From the NCBI GenBank assembly GCA_003427395.1, contig BFEA01000035.1, positions 4,799,343-4,863,342 on the forward strand: DNA of 64,000 nt, written 5' to 3'. This document shows, in pieces, positions 8,790 to 58,872 of the stretch. The stretch's first letter is position 1; each line of letters starts with the position of its first letter. The notes below the pieces were generated by a model. The model saw only the letters and a list, made by a program, of their open reading frames with translations, had not been told where the DNA came from and ran no database searches. A program made the position numbers and the translations under genes. The DNA comes from Chara braunii (lineage: Eukaryota > Plantae > Charophyceae).

Positions 8790-11116
8790 ACTAATGTGAG
8801 TATGCCTTGATTTTGAAGCCGGGGGTCAATCGTAACGACCTGACTGTTGTAAAGAGATTCAGAGTCTTTTCAGACATATTACGCGCGATCCTCCTCCCCC
8901 CCCCCCCCCCCCAACAAAAAAAAAGCAGAGAGACTGTTTCAAATTTAATCATTTCTCCAGCATAAAAAGAAGGCCACCAACTTGGACGAAGGCCATCCTG
9001 AGACCGTACTCACAGTATCACTTTCCTGGATGTATCTGACCAGGATCACCACTCCCAACTCACGTATCTGACCGCAATTATGATCAGAGCTGAGGCAAAA
9101 ATGTCCTAGTGTGAGTACGCCCTGAAAAGGTAATCTCACACTCGACAGAGGAATTGAAAAAAAAAACGCCGCGAGCTTTCTTGCTTCAATAATAATTATT
9201 ATGGTGAGCCTGCTTGGTCTAATGACTTACTTTATATTTTTCCAGCAAAAAATCACAAACCGTTTTATGACTTCTCCATCCTCTAAGAGCGTACTCACAC
9301 AGCGGTGGCAGTCTAGCAAAATCTGCTGAATTTTCTTTCCCATGTTTGCTGAAATCATACCCCGCCCCCTCACACATGGGTTGCAAACCAGATCCGGCAA
9401 TTACAAAATTGGTGCCTCGCATGGTCACAAAGAGAGGAAATTTTCTTTTACGAATTCCCAAAAGGCGAAAGAGAATTTGCCACCACCTCTCGAGGAGGTA
9501 GCAAAATGCCCATCCCTGCCGTCCCCCAGGCTGCTGACAAATGCTACCCCCTTTGCAATTTTCGTGGTCCCAAAACCCTAGTGTGACTGACTCTCACAGC
9601 ATAGCAGATTTTGCGATTTAGCAAAAAAAACCGCTAGTGTCAGGGCATACTCACACTACCGTTTTTTTTTGCTAAATGGCAAAATCTGCTATGCTGTTAG
9701 AGTCACACTAGGGTTTTCCGACCACCAAAATTGCAAACGGGGTAGCATTTGTCAGCGGCCTGGGCATTTTGCCACCACCTCGAGAGGTGGTGGCAAATTT
9801 TCTTTTGGCTGTCGCAAATTCTCTTTAGCCTTTTGGGAATTGTTAAAAATAAAATTCCGCGCTTTGTGACCATGATAGGCAGCAATTCTGCAATTGCCAG
9901 AGAGTCCCGCTCGTGTCCTTTGTGATTTGCAACCCATGTGTGACCGGGCGGGGTACTATTTCAGCAAACACGGGAAAGAAAATTCAGCAGATTTTGCTAG
10001 ATTGCCACCGCTGTGTGAGTACGCCCTGAGTATGCCCTAAGAGCGTAATCACACAAGGGTGCCATAGCAGCAAAATCTGTTCTACCCCCTTTGCAATATC
10101 CGTGGTCGGAAAACCCTAGTGTTACTCTCACAGCATAGCAGATTTTGCAATTTAGCCAAAAAAAACGCTAGTGTGAGTATGCCCTAAGAACCAGATCCCA
10201 CCTCTATTCTTTTTGGCGAGAAACGGCCTTTTTTGGGATCCCACCTCTTTCCACGTGAGGCGGAGAGGGCCCTCTTTTCTCGCGGATGTGGAAACGGAAG
10301 TGGACGTGTCGAGCCGGCCGCGTTTGCAGGCCAGAAAGTTCTTTTGAAAACGCAAAGGAAGACGACCCCGTCTTTTCCCAGAAAAAGAAGGCGGGGTTTT
10401 CCTTTTCCTTTTTTTTTTTTTGTACATGTCCGCAAGAGGCACTTGGAACGTCCGCAGGCCGCACAACACCCGACCAATTGTCCGGGTGGACCGACTTCGG
10501 GAAGTAGGTCTCTTGTCACGCCCACAGATTTCCGACGCGAATCCTGAAAAAGAACCCAATATCGTGGACTGGTGGGATCCCATTTCTCTTTTACGGTCCG
10601 GCCGGGACGGGCCCTACAAAACCGTTCTTTTTCGTGTCTTTCCAAAAAGAATTGAGGTGGGATCTGAAAAAGAACCGAATATCATGGACTGGCGACACAG
10701 CGGTGCCATTGCTATCCCGATTTTGCTGAGATGACACCCCGCCCAGTCACATAGCGGCATCAAATCACAAAAGACACGAGCCCGACTTTCTGGCAATTGC
10801 CAAAATGGAGCCTCGCGTGGTCACACAGCACGAGGCCCAAATCCTTCAACTTTTTCTTTTTCTTTCAACAAAGTTCGTTTCGAATTTCCTTTCATGAACT
10901 CTGGAACTGAAAACAAAAAAAAAAATTGCTACCACCTCCACAGGTGGTAGCAAAATGCCAAAATGCCCTTCCCCTCCTTGGCCCGGCCAAGCCGCTGACA
11001 TTTGATACCGCGTTTGCTGCTTTCGCCACTTTCCCCGCCTCGTGCGACTGGCCCAACCATCAAATTCTTGAAACCCTCAAATTTTTAGCCTTAAAGGCCC
11101 TAGAGTGAGTAGGCCC
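8790..11116. mobile_element. Cluster of nested PIF/Harbinger-like MITEs (TIR G(G/A)GCGTACTCACAC), including a ~740-bp foldback at 9287-10026
   Basis: Repeated TIR GGGCRTACTCACAC / GTGTGAGTAYGCCC with TAA/TGA 3-bp flanks (e.g. 10041-10184 flanked by TAA); long inverted arms at 9287-9640 and 9660-10026. Confidence 0.75.
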
Positions 11117-12638: not shown

Positions 12639-15152
12639 ATGGACCCCTCATCCAATTCAGAGGAGGAGCGCATTAGAGAGATGGTCCAAAAATGCTTTGA
12701 GGACGGAATTTTTCCCGAAGGGTTAGACCATGGATCATGCGTAACTGACGGAAGGACGGCAACGATTACACTTAACCCCGTTCTGGATGATGTAGTAGTC
12801 AAATGGCTGAAGGAAAGGACAGTTGTTGTCATTTTCCAAGGGGATGCGAGGGATTTGCCAAATAAAATTAAAGAAATGTTAATTCGTATTTATGAGGACG
12901 GTTGGTATGCTAACCCTAGTGTCAACCCTTCACTGAAAAGGGGGAGGGTCAAATTTGAGGGTTCTAGCGTTTTTTCGTATGTCGCAACCACAAAGGACAT
13001 CGCTGAGTTTATGATTCAGAAAGGGGCCGACACGATCGTGTTTAAGGATCCCCAAACTCCGGGGAGCCCTGACATTCACTACTCAGTCCAATTTCGGCGT
13101 TGGTCAACAAAAAAGGAATTGGATGATATTCGAGCACAGGAAGCGGAATGGGTTATGGCCATACGGGTTTCCCTTCGCGCCATGTTTCATCTTCATTGGG
13201 CGGTGGAAAACTCCATGGCCAAGATCCTGAAAACATACCCACCGCAGAAGGATAACCACTTCCCTAGATTGATGAATGTAAAAATGGATCTGGCCCCGGA
13301 GGCGAGGCAGTTGTGGAAGGAGAAATTGGAATTTGAAAAGGATGGGGAAGTTTTCAAACTTGAATTCATATCTCAGGCAACGGACTGGTGTAAGAAATGA
13401 AAGTGGTATTATCATACGGAAGATAGCACGGCCTGCCCACGACACCCACAGCATTATATGCACGCTCAGGGCAACGCTCAAGGATCTACCTTCATGGGGG
13501 AGGGGTGGCATCGAAACAGAAGACTCAGCAACCTAGCTCTTCTCGTTCCTCTGGCCCGGCTTCGGCTGCGGTCCAGCCCCCTCGCCCCCCTTTGTCGACA
13601 ACTTTCAGTCCACTTGGCATCCCTGCGTTGGGCGGACTGCCTCAACCACAGCATGCTAACCAGCCGAGCATTCTCATGCCAAGATCTACACCCGGGCCGA
13701 CCCAAGGGGCGTTTCCTCAGTTTGTAGTAACCCAGCAGTTCTAGGGAGCCTTCCGGGGCCCGTCTTTGGTGACCCCTACTGGCCCAGCACCTGTAGTCCC
13801 ACCTGGGTTTCAGTTTTGTCCTTCCTATATACCGCCAGGGTTTGGGGTGCAATTGGGTCCGGGGCTGTGTAACGGGAAGTTCTATATGTCTGGGCCAATA
13901 ATGGGGGGGGGATCTCCAACGTTCAGCGGCAGCAGATCGAATCCCATCTATGAACCAGAACCACCACCCCCAGGGGGGTCATTCACTTCACCCCCGAGCA
14001 GTCCTACACGGTCCCAGCAAATGCCACAGCAACAGCAACAGCTGCTGGGCAAGGGGGCAGGAGGGCCTACGCCCACGCCAATGATGCCGGTCACTTCCCA
14101 ACAGATGTCGGTTGGGTTCCAACAAATGCCGGCTGCTTCTCATCAAATGCCGGTCGGGGTTCCACAGAACCCGGTAGTGTCGCATCATTCGGGGCCAGGA
14201 GTCATACCGCCAGGAAGTGGGGTAGGACATACTCCTGCAATGACCCTGGGTAATCTGTTTTTGCAGACAAACGCTTCAGAGGGTGCAGCGGGGGGCGCGG
14301 TGCCCTCCGCTGCGGAAGGTGCAGCGGGGGGATTAACAGAGCAGCTCCCTCTGAGAGGTAGCAAGTGTTCGACAAAGCAACGGCGCACTCAGCTAGATGG
14401 ATTAGATGAGGAGAAATCCTCCCGCTCATTTGGCTTTTCCGATGGAGAGTCGTCCGCCTCATCTGTCGTGCCTGCAGCTGAAACTCTGTGGAATCTGAAC
14501 TTGGACCCAGGGAAGGAACCCGACATGGCCAATGGCATGGGCATGGCCTCAATTCCCAAGGAATTAATTAATTCCTCCAAAAGAATAGTGCCGATTATTT
14601 GTATTCCTGATACACAGGGGGCGTTAGTTATGGGGTTTGATAAGGGTAACAGATGTGTGGGGCTAGCCTCCTTTTCCACGGAGTCACCGCAATGAGACGA
14701 TTCTGACCTGTGTAAAGAGATTGCTGAGGAACAGATTCCCTTGCCGTGTTGTTCCGAATGTTACAATGGGGAGAGCAGTTCGTCAACATCCGGCAGGGGT
14801 GTGCCACCGTCTGTACGTCCCGTATGTGGACCTTCGCCTCCCTCCTGATGCCTTCCCAGTGCTTGAAAGTGAAGGTGTAGTCTGGGACCCTGGCAGATGG
14901 TTTGATAAGGTGGACAATCCGAACTTGAAAGGCATCTTCTTGGAAGATGGCCTTCCAACGGATTTCGTTGCTGAATGCAATTTGAAATTACGTGGTAGGA
15001 ACTTGTCATCTCCCTTTTTCAGGGACAGCCTAACTACTCAGTGGACTGCCCCCCAGGAAGGGGCTGAGATGGGTCGGAGAAGGAAAATCCCAGGGGGTGC
15101 GAGGGGAACTGGTCAAATCCATGAACATTGCGACCAGACCCAGGGGTCATGA
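12639..15152 (+). pseudogene. LINE A ORF1: RRM-like N-terminus, CCHC knuckle, Pro/Gln-rich linker, C-terminal conserved domain
   Basis: ORFs 12639-13400, 13505-14695 and 14721-15152 joined across stops/frameshifts; WCKK*KWYYHTEDSTAC knuckle aligns with LINE B WCRKCRWYFHTEENC. Confidence 0.8.
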
Positions 15153-52116: not shown

Positions 52117-53903
52117 TCACGACTTAAGAAGCCATTCAGTCACAATCAATCCCCTGGAGCTGTGCACCCCAGCCAGCTGGTTTCCTATTGCCCACGTCCT
52201 AAGGAACCACCACAGTTCCCTCCTGGGGGCTTTGCCCTTCCTCTCCCTCCTACTCCAATCTACCAAAATGGCCTGACTGATGCCTTTCTTGATTGCCACC
52301 TTGAGTTCAGTATCCGAGAACGGGCGGAGTTCGAACCTTGACCTGTTCCTATCTGCCCAAATCACCGAGCAGATGACCGCCCTTACCACCTGAGCTACGT
52401 AGGGCCAACCCCTTTTTCCTGTGTGCCCCTCCGGCGTAAAACCTAGTAAAACCCATCTTTCGTCCCAGGTGATCAGTGCCCCTCCCAACTGTTCCCAGTG
52501 CTGTCCCCACCACTTCCAGATCCTCTTGGATGCTGGACAGTCCCACCACAAGTGTTTGGTGGATTTGAACGGCCAGGTGCATCTTGTGCACCCTAGGTTG
52601 ACCTTCACTCCTCTCGCAACCAGCCATACCGCTGAGGGGGTGACCAGTAACGACAGCATCCAGAGGATAGCCGCCTTCTTAGGGTAGGGCAGCTCTTGTA
52701 AGACTCCCCAGAGTCTTCTGAAATCTTCCGCAGCGCCCTCCAGGTCATCCAGAAGTACAGCGCTCCATCTGCTAATAGCGACAGATGTGGGGGAGCGCTG
52801 GCAGTCTTCCGACAACTTGTAGGAGTCTCCCACAGAGATGTTGGATAGATCCAAAACTGTGGATGGGGGGATTGCAATTTTGCTCCCATTCCAACCCCAG
52901 GCCAAGGGGTCAATTGCCAGCTCCCTGAGAGGACATTTTCCAACCCATTGAGTCTTAACGAGATCCCCCCTGCCATTCTTCCACTCGATTACCCTTGCCT
53001 GGGGAGGATTATCCCATCTCAGTATCACCTCTTCCCCTCTCAGATGCAGAGAAACATTCTGCCTCGAGTCCTCCCACACTTGAACCTTTCTGAACCCGGA
53101 TGTCGTAAGCTCCAGCACTTTCCAAACTTCCCGTCCAGTCCCCCGTTTCTGGGCAGTACCAGGTGTTCATCGGGTCTAAGCCACCTGGTCCTAGTATAGT
53201 CTTCCAGTCCTCCGGGACAGCCGACAGCAGGTTACTCCAGTTCTCCTGCACATTCCTCAAGCCCTGTAGAGTGGGCATAATCTCCTGGAGCAGTAGCCAG
53301 GTATTTGTGAGTAGGGACCATAAATCCGCTATCCTAGAAATGCCCCTTCGAACCCAGGCTCTGCCAAAGGTCCCTGGTTCCGTACCCGCAGAGAAGAGGG
53401 ACCCGTCTGGTTTGCAGATGTGAGGGTTCTCGAACAAGGACTGCAGCAGTACTTCCTCTTTGGTACACGGTGGGGTGCGGGTGTCCGGCGGCAGACGTAC
53501 CCAAGCTCTCCGAACCGCCTCCCAAAATTCTGACCGAAGCTTTTGCTTCGCGAATGATGGGAGAAAGAAGCAGAGCCACACGTCCTCCGCTCTACTCAGT
53601 TTCCACAGCCGCATGAGGATCCGCTCTGCTAGGTACACCCAGTCTTCTTTCTCCTCTGCCATCGCCACCCGGGAGAGCCACATGCGAAGTTGGGCCTTGT
53701 TCTTCCGCTCGGGGTCAACCAGGGCTAAGCCCCCCTGTTCTGTTGAAAAGGTTATCAGCTCCCATGCGACTTTGACAATGAAACCCTCGTCCATTTTTGC
53801 GATGGGCTTCCAGAGGAATCTGGCAGCCATTCTCTTGATCTCCATGAGGGTAGATTTCAAAATTTCTCTCACTGTGCCAACATACCAAATAAGGGAGAAC
53901 AGG
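52117..53903 (-). pseudogene. LINE B ORF2 C-terminal half (post-RT, zf-RVT-like region)
   Basis: RFLWKP..QGGLA..SLFENP..CTRC..HLWWDC..IWADRN; collinear with LINE A 17640-19378. Confidence 0.92.
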
Positions 53904-56082
53904 CTCGACTACGCTTTCTCTCAAGGGCAAAGATTACCCGGTCGCTTTCAAACCTTGGATGACAAAATCGGAATTGAAAGAACTTAAGTTGAAAGAGGCA
54001 GAGACCAACTTCTGGATCATGGCACTCAGAGTGCCCCTGGATGCAATGTATTACCTGCCTAGTGCAGTCGAGGGCCTCATAGGGGGGGTCAAGCACATGC
54101 ACGCTCCAGAAGCAGACAGAAGCCGGCCGAAGTTGATGAACATAAAATTAGACATGGATCCTCAGGCAAGATTCCGTGTAGAGGATACGCTGGTGATAGA
54201 GTCTCCAAAAGGGGAGTTGTGGAAAGTGGAAGTTGCGACTCCGTTTTCCGACTGGTGCAGGAAGTGCCGCTGGTACTTCCATACTGAGGAGAACTGCCCC
54301 CGTGAGGATAAAGTGGAGCGACCGAGCAGACAGTGGCCTAGACAGCAGAAACCTGCACAGAGAGTGGAAACGGCAGGGTCCTGAAGAAGAGTTGCAGATC
54401 AAACGGCAGGGCCTAACTCGCAGGACCAGGCAGCACACCCTGCGTACGAACCTCCCTATAGAAGGTCTCAGAGCTACCCAGCCGTAGGGCTGGCGACTGG
54501 TGAACGCTCAGTGCATGGTCCTAGGCCGCCCGACCCGAACTACCCGATACAGGGCTCTGCACAGCCTCAAGGGTTTCAGGATGAGGTTGGTCGTGCGGGA
54601 GGTGGAAGCCAGGTTGCAGAGTATCGGCCAGTCCATATGCAATCTGCAGTCCAACAACCAATATTGTATGCACAGCAAGCGGAGCTCGCTCCACCTGTAC
54701 TCATCCACCATCAGGACCTCGGAGGCCGACAGGGTAACGGTGTGCCAGCGTGTTCGCTCCCTGCTTATTGGCCTGGAAGCGGTCCAGCTCCCCTGCCCCC
54801 CCTTCCTCCTTTCCATCCTCAACACCCACTTACCTATGGCCCAAGGGCCCAGGATCCCAACTGTGCCTTGGTTCATCCGGGAGTTGGAATTTGCTACCCA
54901 ACACCAGTAAGACCGTACTCTCATCATTTTCATTTGCATGCAGAGCATAATAATGGATTGGCCCAGGCTAGTGAGTGGCCCATGCAGGAGCACTCTCACC
55001 TGATCAGGGAGAGGGAGAGTCAGGACAGGCAGAACTACGGGAATCACTCAAGGTTAGGAGGGGTTTCACACCCCCAGCTAAGCCTGGCTGAGAGGCATAC
55101 CAGTAGCAGACCGGGGATGGAGCGTGTGGAGGAATATCAAAGAGAGGGGACAACAAGGGGTGGAGCAAGGGGTGGAGCAAGGGGAGGAGCAAGGGGTGGA
55201 GCGCAAGGTGGAGGGACAACACAACTGTCCCTGTCGTCAAGGTCTAGAGTGGGGGTGGGTAGCGAGCTGTTAGGAGACGAGCTGCTGGCGGCAGGCATGA
55301 ACCCGCTGTTTGAAGAACGGTCAGAATCATCTACAGGTAGTTCGGGTGCTTCTCGCAGATAGCATGCAGCTGTCTCAGGTACAGGTAGTAGGAATGCGGT
55401 TCACGCGGATGGTGGGATAGGGTGCAAATCTAAGCGATACGATGGACAACTACCGATTGAAAGAAGAATTGTGCCATTGGTGTGCTCAAAAGCGAGAGAT
55501 GGTATCTTCTTCCTAGGGAGGTTTGATGCTGAGGGGAGGCAACATCTCCCTTCAGAGATAATTGAGAAGTCGCCAACCCCACTGGAGGTGGTGGCACGTG
55601 CCAAGAGGCTGTTCGGGGATGCTTTCCCAATGCGACTAGTCCCGAGGTCAACGATGGCTAGTGTTTTGGTTGCGCTGCAGGAAAAGGTCTACAAGTTCTA
55701 CTTTTCGATCATGGATGCTCGAGTAGACCCCAGCACTGCGGATGCTCTCTCGGGGGCAGGCGTCAGATGGTTCCTCCTGGATGCAGTGAGGGAACGGAAC
55801 AGCCAGGAGCTGGAGGAGATTTCTATCACATCAGAGGTTTCTGCCCTCCTTCTTTTGAACTTGAACGAGAAGCTGCTAGAGAAGGAGAATCTACACTCTA
55901 ACTTCCTTGCCAGTGCCCTAGTGGAACCTTGGAGAACAGCATCTCAGTCGTCTCAGTCACAGTCGTCGAGAGGAAGTTCGATGATCAGATCCCCCGCAGT
56001 TGCACAAGGGAGATGGGCTGATGAAGTCCATGAATCTAACCGCATCCAAAATCAGGCGGTAAACTTAAATGTCAATGGTTAG
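53904..56082 (+). pseudogene. LINE B ORF1 (5' truncated): CCHC knuckle, low-complexity linker, C-terminal conserved domain
   Basis: WIMALRVPL..PKLMNIKLDM..WCRKCRWYFHTEENC homologous to LINE A ORF1; single frame with internal stops. Confidence 0.85.
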
Positions 56083-58579
56083 GTGGAGAGTTGCAACATG
56101 GAATGTCAGGGGAATGGGGGACACAACGGGGAGAGAGAAGAAGAAGAGAATTAAGTCATGGATGCATAAGGAGAAGGTGGATTGTCTCTGCCTGCAAGAG
56201 ACAAAACTGAATGAGGAAAGATTAGCAGATTTGCCTTCCTGGTGGAGGGGTCCCCAGGTGTGGTCACCAGTGCAGGGAACAAGAGGTGGGGTAGCGATAC
56301 TACTGCACAAGAAGTGGTTACCGCACGTTATAGATTCGGAGGCAGACCTTTGGGGCCGTTGGGTGTGGCTGAGGTTGAGATGGGGGCAAAAGGATCTTGT
56401 GATCATGGGTATCTACGCCCCATCGGAGCCGAGTGGGCAGGCCACCTTCTTCAAGAGGCTGCAGATGGTAATTCCAGAGGCAGATAGTCTGCTGGTGGCA
56501 GGAGACTGGAATGTGTCATTAGACGATGCAATGACTGAAGGCTCCTCTTCAGCAGGGAGATCAGATGCGGTAGCACTCCTTGACCTCTTGAGGAACCAGG
56601 ATCTTGCTGACCCCTTCCGCATGCTGAACCCCGATGATCTGGGTTACACATGGTTCTCTCATATCAGGAGGGACAAAGGAGAGGTGACTAGAGCGGTTGG
56701 ATTACTTCCTAGCAGGGAAGTCCCTGTCCCAGAAGGTCCTTTCTGTGAACCACCTTGCTCACCCAATTTCTGATCACAAAGCAGTGGTGCTGGACGTACT
56801 TCTGGATACGGGCTTTGAGAGAGGGAGGGGTCACTTCAAGTTCAATAACTGGAACTTGGAGGAACAAGAAGTGGAGGACTGGGTGAAGGAGCACATGAGA
56901 GACTGGCAGTCGGTGAGGGAACTCTTCCCCTCATCAGTGGACTGGCTTGATGGGGGCGTGGCAATTATCTCAGGGATAATGGACGTCTGTTCCCGGATCC
57001 TGGCCAGGGACCGCAACAGGGAGGAGGCGGACTGTAAGAAGGCAGTAGAACGGGCGGAATGGAAGATGGAGCAACATCCGGTCTCTGAGCTTTTGTGGGC
57101 GGCCGAAAGAGAGAGAAGCTTGGCAAAGTGGGACAAGCTCCAGTTGGAAAAGCATCAAAGGTGGGAAGAGGCACTGCGAGTGAAGGGAGTGATAGTGCAA
57201 GACAGGCTCACAAAGGACACTTTTCAGAGGTTACTGCCCAACAGAGATTACCAACAAGTGGTTCAACTGAACCATCCGTTTGACGAGAGGGCGGTCCCGG
57301 TATCAGACCCGGGAGGAATGCTGGAGTACGCCCGCCTATACTACGCGGACGTTTTGAGCACCAGGCGTACACATGACACAGTCCACTCAGATCTATCTCA
57401 AGAGATTGATATGTGGGCAGACACAGCGGTGGTGTTGACGAATGAGGAAAGGCTCTCCTTGGACAGGCCAATAACGATGGAGGAGGGCCAACAGACCTTA
57501 AGGGTAATGGCGTCCGGTAAATGCCCTGGGGTAGATGGACTGACGGTGGAATTTTACCGCAAATTCTGGAATACGGTAGGACGTCCGCTAGTAGAAGTTT
57601 ACAATGACGTCCTCACAGGGGGTAGGCTGGGCAAGGGGATGACGCATGGGGTTATCTCGCTGATGTTCAAGAAGGGTGACAAAGCCAATGTCCGAAACTA
57701 CCGTCCTATCTCGGTGCTCAATGTGGACTACAAGATTCTAGCCAAGACGCTGGCGCTGAGACTGGGGAGGCTGCTAGCAAGTCTGGTGGAGAGGGACCAG
57801 GGTGATTTTGTGCAGGGAAGGTCTATATTTGTTAATATTCTTACGGCTATCGAGTTTGAGGTTGTGCAAGCCAAGAATAGAGAAGTTGCAGTACTTTTGC
57901 TAGACTTGGAAAAAGTCTATGATCGTGTGGGATGGGCATTCGTTCTGGCGACACTAAGGAAAATGGGTTTTGGTGAGGGTTTTTGCAGATGGGTGATTGC
58001 AATGTATACGCTGTCAACCTCAGCAGTTTTCGTCAATGGCCACCTGTCTCAATCGTTCCAGCTGTCCCGTTCACTACGTCAGGGTTGCCCCCCCGCCCCA
58101 CTCCTCTTTGTGCTCCAGTTGGAGGTCCCCCTGAACTGCATCAGGAAGCACCAGAGCATTAGAGGCATTCAGATTTCGACAAACAAGGATTGCAGGGTGA
58201 AAGCCCTAGCGGATGACCTGTTTATGGTATCCGAGAATTCCAAGTCATCCCTAGAGGCGATCAAGACAATCCTCATGAACTACTCACAGTTGTCTGAAGC
58301 GCTCGTCAATTGGAACAAATCTGCTTACATTCTCCCTACACAATACTCACTGCAAGTGGAATGGGGAATGCAGCGAGTGGACTCTAAGGCAGGGGAGCGA
58401 TTCTTGGGAGTATTGGTGAGCCTACAGATCATGGAAAGTGCACAGGGACTGGTCCTGCAGCAAAGGTTGATGACCAAGCTCAGGGTCTGGGGCTCAGCGT
58501 GGCACCTCTCCCTGTTTGGGAGAGCGTTGGTAATCAACGTGGCCCTGTTCTCCCTTATTTGGTATGTTGGCACAGTGAG
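56069..58579 (+). pseudogene. LINE B ORF2 N-terminal half: APE endonuclease plus RT
   Basis: TWNVRG, CLQETK, IYAP, GDWN, SDH; YRPIS, DLEKVYD, RQGCP, LADD; one frameshift near 56690. Confidence 0.95.
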
Positions 58580-58657
58580 CCAAGATTTATGAAGTGGACG
58601 GAACTTGTGAGCTTACCTCTACCTTTTTTCTTGAGGATTCTTTTTGGGGGAAACTAC

Positions 58658-58872
58658 GTCGCAAAAACGAGTTATAATTGCACAAGGGGCCAAGATACAG
58701 TTTCGAATTGCAGTTCGGGCACTGTATACAACCCAGCTTTCTGTCCAGGTAGGGTGCCCGAACTGCAATTGCAAACTGTATCTTGCCCCCTAGTGCAATT
58801 ATATACAGTGCCCGAACTGCAATTGCAAACTGTATCTTGGCCCCTTGTGCAATTATAACTCGTTTTTGCGAC
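58658..58872. mobile_element. Foldback MITE with ~70-bp inverted arms
   Basis: GTCGCAAAAACGAGTTATAATTGCACAAGGGGCC... inverted at 58803-58872. Confidence 0.8.

Follow-up and report, generated by a model that had tools for sequence, protein, structure and literature searches.

A predicted Nudix fold without a Nudix box at the C-terminal end of L1 ORF1 proteins in Chara braunii

The ORF1 proteins of two L1-type retrotransposons (termed LINE A and LINE B), found together in a single stretch of Chara braunii DNA of 64,000 nucleotides (the whole of the analysed sequence, termed ‘the window’ below), share at their C-terminal ends a block of approximately 160 amino acids that is predicted to adopt the Nudix fold and that carries no Nudix box. 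The explanation that best accommodates the evidence, and that is considered probable, is that this ‘pseudo-Nudix’ domain is a box-less Nudix-fold module of ORF1p that has been kept by selection across a broad, old set of L1 families of C. braunii, where it serves binding rather than hydrolysis.

The features of both elements are collected in Table 1. LINE B is an L1-type element, in which an AP endonuclease (Pfam Exo_endo_phos, E 1.5e-16) followed by a reverse transcriptase (RVT_1, E 2.9e-27) is encoded by an ORF2 that lies directly downstream of ORF1. Its ORF1 is truncated at the 5' end, lacking approximately the first 140 amino acids when compared with an intact relative of 850 amino acids (P0002) and keeping only the last part of the RRM-like region. 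The CCHC knuckle of LINE A is broken by a stop, and the window copies of both elements are dead. Because their reverse transcriptases are 46% identical, and the N-terminal regions of their ORF1 proteins 40% identical, LINE A and LINE B represent two different L1 families. An inverted fragment of the C-terminal part of a LINE ORF2 (52117-53872, minus strand) adjoins the truncated LINE B ORF1 (from 53959, plus strand) on its upstream side, an arrangement that is compatible with twin-priming.

Table 1. Positions, within the window, of the ORF1 and ORF2 features of LINE A and LINE B
Feature	Position	Strand	Remarks
LINE A ORF1	12639 to ~15152	+	several frameshifts; own ORF2 downstream
LINE A ORF1 N-terminal RRM-like region, up to broken CCHC knuckle	12639..13400	+	
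LINE A pseudo-Nudix domain, first part (KRIVPIIC...)	14579..14671	+	frame of ORF 13766-14695
LINE A pseudo-Nudix domain, remainder after 1-nt frameshift near 14672	14673..15044	+	frame of ORF 14721-15152
LINE B ORF1 remnant	53959..56082	+	single frame; in-frame stops at 54382-54384 and 55360-55362
LINE B end of RRM-like region and CCHC zinc knuckle	53959..54297	+	knuckle CX2CX4HX4C at 54256-54297
LINE B linker, Pro/Gln/Gly-rich, poorly conserved	54298..55446	+	no Pfam family
LINE B pseudo-Nudix domain (model residues 1-162)	55447..55932	+	AlphaFold2 model and Nudix-fold matches
LINE B ORF1 tail, Ser/Gln-rich, conserved x-I-Q/H motif	55933..56082	+	stop overlaps ORF2 start region
LINE B ORF2 (AP endonuclease and reverse transcriptase)	56069..58592	+	frame change near 56700-56770

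A preliminary description of this DNA had proposed that two divergent L1 families share a C-terminal block in ORF1, preceded by a non-conserved linker rich in proline and glutamine, and both parts of that proposal are borne out. When the block of LINE B is compared by BLASTP with the larger of the two pieces found in LINE A, the two are 26% identical over 151 amino acids (E 1e-10), and the short LINE A piece that contains the RIVP motif is also matched (E 3e-4), so that the likeness between the two elements is far above chance. All of the motifs that had been listed (RIVP[IL][IV]C, FP[CM]R[VL]VP..TM, D.R and GV.W) are present in both, and in LINE B the stretch that runs from RIVPLVC through GVRW to EPW (55465-55932) is free of stops. 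When LINE B is aligned with P0002, the sequence that separates the CCHC knuckle from the block is 30% identical, with insertions and deletions. A weak tblastn match elsewhere in the window to the first third of the domain (9764-9937, minus strand; 40% identity over 63 amino acids, E 0.007) was considered as a third copy and rejected: it is riddled with stops, and may at most be the decayed remains of a third copy, or chance.

An exhaustive HMMER search of 1.84 billion representative sequences, conducted with a single sequence and therefore liable to miss distant relatives outside Chara, identified 47 representative proteins that contain the block (E<=1e-3), of which 19 pass E<=1e-10; identities range from 21 to 84%. 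Twenty-nine of the 30 relatives that were looked up are C. braunii GenBank proteins, annotated as hypothetical or uncharacterised, and the remaining one comes from a second NCBI assembly. The block lies near the C-terminal end in most of the relatives, and many of their gene models continue into endonuclease and reverse transcriptase domains, as expected for models that read through from the ORF1 of a LINE into its ORF2. Searches against described families were negative: no Pfam family was matched by the block, either in the window proteins (at E<=1) or in the 37 aligned members (at E<=10); a profile search of PDB sequences returned no match at E<=10; and word-index protein searches returned none with the single domain or with the 37-sequence profile, although the latter search carries no weight, since it also missed four known family members of suitable length (P0015, P0017, P0023 and P0033).

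In its full form, ORF1p is built in the following order: RRM-like domains, a CCHC knuckle, a low-complexity linker of 100-385 amino acids, the pseudo-Nudix domain (approximately 160 amino acids) and a tail of 30-58 amino acids, which in the relatives that end naturally is all that follows the block. An AlphaFold2 model of the N-terminal region of P0002 (residues 1-256), for which an alignment of 18 such regions (A4) was used, displays repeated beta-alpha-beta units at a pLDDT of 82.7, and its best Foldseek matches are the tandem RRM proteins Prp24, IMP3 RRM12 and hnRNP A1, with human L1 ORF1p matched as well; the E-values of these matches (8e-4 to 1e-2) are weak, as is expected for a multi-domain model. 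The zinc knuckle, of the form CX2CX4HX4C, is found in LINE B, and 22 of the 47 relatives possess it as well. The protein is thus a plant-type (Type I) ORF1p with a C-terminal extension composed of linker, pseudo-Nudix domain and short tail, and the expectation that the ORF1 of a plant L1 combines RRM and CCHC elements holds here, in the form of the predicted RRM-like fold and the knuckle. The block is always found directly upstream of the ORF2 start. Because only a short tail separates it from an ORF1 stop that overlaps the ATG with which ORF2 opens, the block is part of ORF1 itself, and no neighbouring host exon. One further locus, L004, which lies in the second NCBI assembly (GCA_003427375.1, BFBZ01005685.1), holds at 421-2383 an ORF1 end with the domain (P0019) and a downstream reading frame that overlaps it by 14 nucleotides, and the layout of this junction is the same as in the other loci of the family.

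It had also been suggested that the block follows the layout of the Nudix fold while lacking the catalytic glutamates of the REUXEE motif, a suggestion for which structure prediction combined with Foldseek was named as a check; the fold that was returned is that of Nudix proteins, and neither another fold nor disorder. With an alignment of 37 block sequences (A2) as input, AlphaFold2 produced a model with a mean pLDDT of 92.6 and a pTM of 0.85 that is ordered over residues 1-160, in which the elements follow each other in the order beta-beta-beta-helix-beta-beta-beta-helix-beta, with additional helices at the C-terminal end. A Foldseek search of the PDB with this model gave 154 matches at E<=1e-3, and the matches listed are all Nudix-fold proteins (among them MutT1, AraR, MUTYH, Ap4A hydrolases, NUDT16, RppH, NrtR and TIRR, 6d0l). 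A second look with VIA-align gave the same Z-score of 10.6 for the C-terminal domain of MutY (120 amino acids, 3.0 A) and for the decapping enzyme g5Rp (137 amino acids, 3.3 A), followed by RppH (Z 9.9) and by mitoribosomal Nudix-fold proteins (Z 9.5-9.8).

The same answer was reached by further searches. An exhaustive VIA search of 48,161 chains, which is independent of Foldseek, placed 42 of them at a Z of at least 8, and nearly all of the best 50 possess a Nudix fold, including KRIT1 (4dx8_H, Z 9.1) and IPP isomerase (1hx3). Among predicted structures, every match listed from the ESM Atlas either carries a NUDIX or NUDIX_4 domain or is named Nudix (TM-score by query 0.53-0.62), and the matches in BFVD are viral Nudix hydrolases (TM-score by query <=0.53). 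Language-model features computed from a single window sequence led to NUDIX clusters in 23 of 30 matches, with Nudt16-like clusters also represented. At the level of a confident predicted model, with Nudix-fold neighbours in every library searched, the domain can be assigned to the alpha/beta/alpha sandwich fold of the Nudix proteins. The case for homology with those proteins is built on this modelled fold (TM-scores of 0.4-0.6, Z of about 10, approximately 10% identity) and on the language-model features; because the structural matches differ by no more than about one Z unit, the Nudix subfamily from which the domain came cannot be named. A viral origin was considered and rejected, as the BFVD matches are ordinary Nudix hydrolases that are no closer to the domain than are cellular ones.

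The motif by which the Nudix family is defined is missing from this fold. The equivalent of the Nudix helix (model residues 45-56/57) follows a conserved Gly-x3-Leu-Pro-Ser loop, which occupies the place of the PGG loop in Nudix enzymes. Within the helix columns (45-57) no acidic residue is conserved, with at most 11 of the 37 members displaying one in any column; the best-kept positions are hydrophobic (48, 52, 55 and 56), together with a single basic one, K/R53. A regular-expression scan found RE.xEE in none of the 37 aligned members, and the full Nudix box (GX5EX7REUXEEXGU), with up to three mismatches allowed, was found at the loop-helix-loop of none of them either, so that the suggested loss of the catalytic glutamates extends to every aligned member of the family. 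Because the box is absent from all 37, and because Pfam NUDIX is not matched at E<=10, the domain constitutes a Nudix fold that fails the defining motif of its family, the box having been either lost or never present.

Outside of the helix, the conserved polar residues are C13, S36, R63, K83, the D90 and R92 of a D90-A-R92 triplet, E121, N140 and S151, to which the conserved W162 can be added. Among the 37 members, D90 is found in 34 (and an acidic residue at that position in 36), R92 or lysine in 34, K83 or arginine in 33, R63 in 31, E121 in 27 and an aspartate or glutamate at position 58 in 26. To judge from their conservation in the alignment, these polar residues and W162 are candidates for the residues of a binding site. 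The net charge of the domain varies across the family (range -8 to +9, median -1), and the idea of a generally basic RNA-binding surface was rejected on the grounds that net charge is not conserved.

A comparison of dN/dS across copies, which had likewise been proposed in advance as a check, could be made between LINE B and its closest copy, L001 (the locus of P0001), and it points to purifying selection on the block. For the RRM/CCHC part of ORF1 the ratio is 0.025 and for the linker about 0.34, and for the pseudo-Nudix domain it is 0.078 (dN 0.074, dS 0.95; bootstrap range 0.043-0.123); an independent alignment of the domain only, over 165 codons, gave a value of 0.086. The differences within the domain are distributed over the first, second and third codon positions as 16, 13 and 65. 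In comparisons of the domain with that of copies further removed, synonymous change has reached saturation (pS 0.76-0.85), while pN does not exceed 0.19-0.33. These substitution patterns indicate strong purifying selection on the domain, and since such selection keeps it, the LINEs would appear to need it.

The very end of ORF1 displays features of its own. The ORF1 stop overlaps an ATG in LINE B (..ATGGTTAG, window 56020-56085) and, with the sequence ..ATGGTTAA, in two other loci of the family, L002 (5480-5560) and L003 (3970-4050), where ORF2 opens at this stop-overlapping ATG (MVK...ATWNVRG). Approximately 36-40 nucleotides upstream of the overlap, an identical CGCATCCAA (R-I-Q) is present in LINE B and at both of these loci; an x-I-Q/H motif is located 10-17 amino acids before the end of ORF1 in most of the family members whose protein has a natural end. 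Over the last 48 codons of ORF1, dS between LINE B and L001 is 0.21, as compared with about 0.9 in the rest of the frame. The low dS and the conserved ORF1 end hint at a signal that acts at the level of the RNA, possibly in termination-reinitiation at ORF2.

Three oligo-dT RNA-seq runs labelled as the same species (6-13% of each) contained essentially no reads that match the coding part of LINE B at a likeness of at least 90%, a result that concerns this dead copy alone and not the expression of live members of the family. Strong coverage was found only at 58569-58700 (mean depth 85-264, with the first mate nearly all on the plus strand), and upstream of 58658 most of the reads continue into unlike sequence. 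In DNA contigs the repetition of this segment is extreme (summed word depth of approximately 37,500), and it is probably an abundant shared 3'-tail motif or a retroposon. Positions 54252-57271 are also spanned by a contig of 3,020 nucleotides that derives from another DNA sample of the same study; it departs from the window at 13 sites, two of which fall within the domain (55705 and 55920), and differences between strains or alleles of a low-copy insertion are the likely cause.

With regard to function, the domain would act as a binding module and not as a pyrophosphohydrolase, in the manner of other Nudix folds without a box: the C-terminal domain of MutY, TIRR/NUDT16L1, CFIm25, mitoribosomal Nudix-fold proteins and KRIT1. 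The preferred guess as to its ligand is that it may hold one that bears a nucleotide (for instance the cap or the 5' end of the element's RNA) or else a defined RNA element, and that ORF1p might thereby be assisted in marking its own transcript, in protecting it or in packaging it. A nucleotide-bearing ligand is favoured because several of the catalytic structural matches are enzymes whose substrates are RNA 5' ends, and because ORF1p coats its own RNA. A role in protein docking is nearly as likely: the spread of net charge across the family, which speaks against an RNA binder that works by general electrostatics, leaves it almost level with the nucleotide-bearing ligand. The box-less Nudix folds that were matched include some that recognise nucleic acids (the MutY C-terminal domain and the mitoribosomal proteins), small ligands (NrtR and AraR) or other proteins (KRIT1 and TIRR).

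In the rival that survives best, the domain would be a protein-protein adaptor, comparable to the Nudix-like domain of KRIT1 or to TIRR, that connects ORF1p with ORF2p, with itself or with a factor of the host and that has no nucleotide or RNA ligand. This is a real, if minor, possibility. An unconserved net charge would be in keeping with it, as would the presence of the protein-binding, non-catalytic folds of KRIT1 and TIRR among the matches, and for RNA binding the protein already possesses RRM-like domains and a CCHC knuckle; however, most Nudix-fold relatives have nucleotides or nucleic acids as their ligands, and the conserved basic residues (K/R53, R63, K83 and R92) would be suited to the binding of phosphate too.

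A more specific version of the 5'-end idea, drawn by analogy with decapping enzymes, is unlikely in the precise form that follows: a dead, decapping-like module would grip the cap or 5' end of the element's own LINE mRNA, thereby protecting it against decapping and decay by the host or labelling it for cis packaging, with the low-complexity linker serving as a tether between this grip and the RRM/CCHC body of the protein. That the domain is instead a working enzyme with a non-canonical active site, which carries out decapping or a nucleotide-pyrophosphatase reaction by means of other conserved acidic and basic residues, is distinctly unlikely. Some Nudix-fold enzymes, such as IPP isomerase, are active without the canonical box, and the exhaustive VIA search itself matched that box-less precedent; the best structural matches include g5Rp, RppH and NUDT16, all of them decapping enzymes; and the polar residues D90, R92/K, R63, K83/R and E121 are near-invariant, with D/E58 present in 26 of 37 members. 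Nevertheless, the helix that would supply the metal-binding glutamates contains no conserved acidic residue in this family, and equally good matches are to non-catalytic proteins (the MutY C-terminal domain, NrtR/AraR, mitoribosomal proteins, KRIT1 and TIRR). It is very improbable that the likeness to Nudix proteins reflects a shared arrangement of strands and helices (through convergence or modelling bias) in an unrelated, lineage-specific ORF1 domain: although neither sequence nor profile matches any Nudix family, the TM-scores are only 0.4-0.6, and models for which Foldseek gives no clear match often reach best Z-scores of 7-8, the chains at a Z of at least 8 number 42 out of 48,161, nearly all of the best 50 are Nudix folds that cover 115-150 residues of the model, the succession of strand, strand, Gly-x3-LPS loop, helix and strands is collinear with the Nudix layout, and language-model features from a single sequence also indicate NUDIX.

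If the preferred reading of a binding module is correct, and its ligand is a cap or 5' end, the domain would bear directly on the manner in which LINE proteins pick their own transcript; were it a dead decapping-like grip, it would represent a strategy for the self-recognition of retrotransposon RNA that has not previously been described. The ORF1 proteins of LINEs are essential, but little about them is understood; what chiefly hints at the way in which RNA is handled in each clade is the set of domains that they contain (RRM, CCHC, coiled coil, esterase, PHD). To the Nudix superfamily, in turn, is added a very divergent, box-less family, with approximately 47 distinct 50%-identity clusters in one genome. 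Being small (approximately 160 amino acids) and confidently modelled, the domain is ready for binding assays.

A survey of the domains found in L1 ORF1 proteins reports RRM, zf-CCHC, DUF4283, Transposase_22 and HTH_1, and no Nudix domain (PMC5203782), and a full-text literature search, the reach of which leaves most subscription journals outside, found no description of a Nudix domain in the ORF1 of a LINE or in any retrotransposon; the pseudo-Nudix domain, conserved and under selection, adds a new type of domain to ORF1. In the classification of Khazina and Weichenrieder (summarised in PMC5203782), the ORF1p of plant L1 elements belongs to Type I, which combines RRM with a CCHC knuckle. The Chara proteins resemble that type in their RRM-like domains, their CX2CX4HX4C knuckle and the AP endonuclease and reverse transcriptase encoded by the ORF2 downstream, and one of them (P0001) is labelled by UniRef as containing DUF4283. 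They differ from it in extending for a further 300-600 amino acids, through a low-complexity linker and into a folded pseudo-Nudix domain.

Of the Nudix folds to which the domain can be compared, the C-terminal domain of MutY/MUTYH (Pfam NUDIX_4), which is its joint best match, is likewise a non-catalytic Nudix fold, and one that reads a feature of a nucleic acid. There is no sequence similarity between the two, however, and the domain of MutY is joined to a glycosylase and recognises 8-oxoG in DNA, whereas that of Chara ends an RNA-binding retrotransposon protein and possesses extra C-terminal helices (model residues 111-160). The decapping and RNA 5'-end enzymes ASFV g5Rp, RppH, NUDT16 and Dcp2 share the fold (Z 8-10.6 over 125-137 residues) and have as their substrate the 5' end of RNA, which a LINE protein that packages RNA could plausibly target as well, but they have a full Nudix box, which every member of the Chara family lacks. 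TIRR/NUDT16L1, whose family is also represented among the language-model matches, and CFIm25/NUDT21 are catalytically inactive Nudix folds that bind rather than hydrolyse (CFIm25 binds UGUA RNA), although they have no detectable sequence relationship to the Chara domain and are stand-alone host proteins rather than modules of a retrotransposon. For the recruitment of an enzyme-type fold as an accessory domain of a LINE ORF1p there is a precedent in the esterase domain found in the ORF1p of CR1/L2-type LINEs (PMC3905857), which differs from the domain described here in having an SGNH fold, in belonging to another LINE clade and in retaining its catalytic residues.
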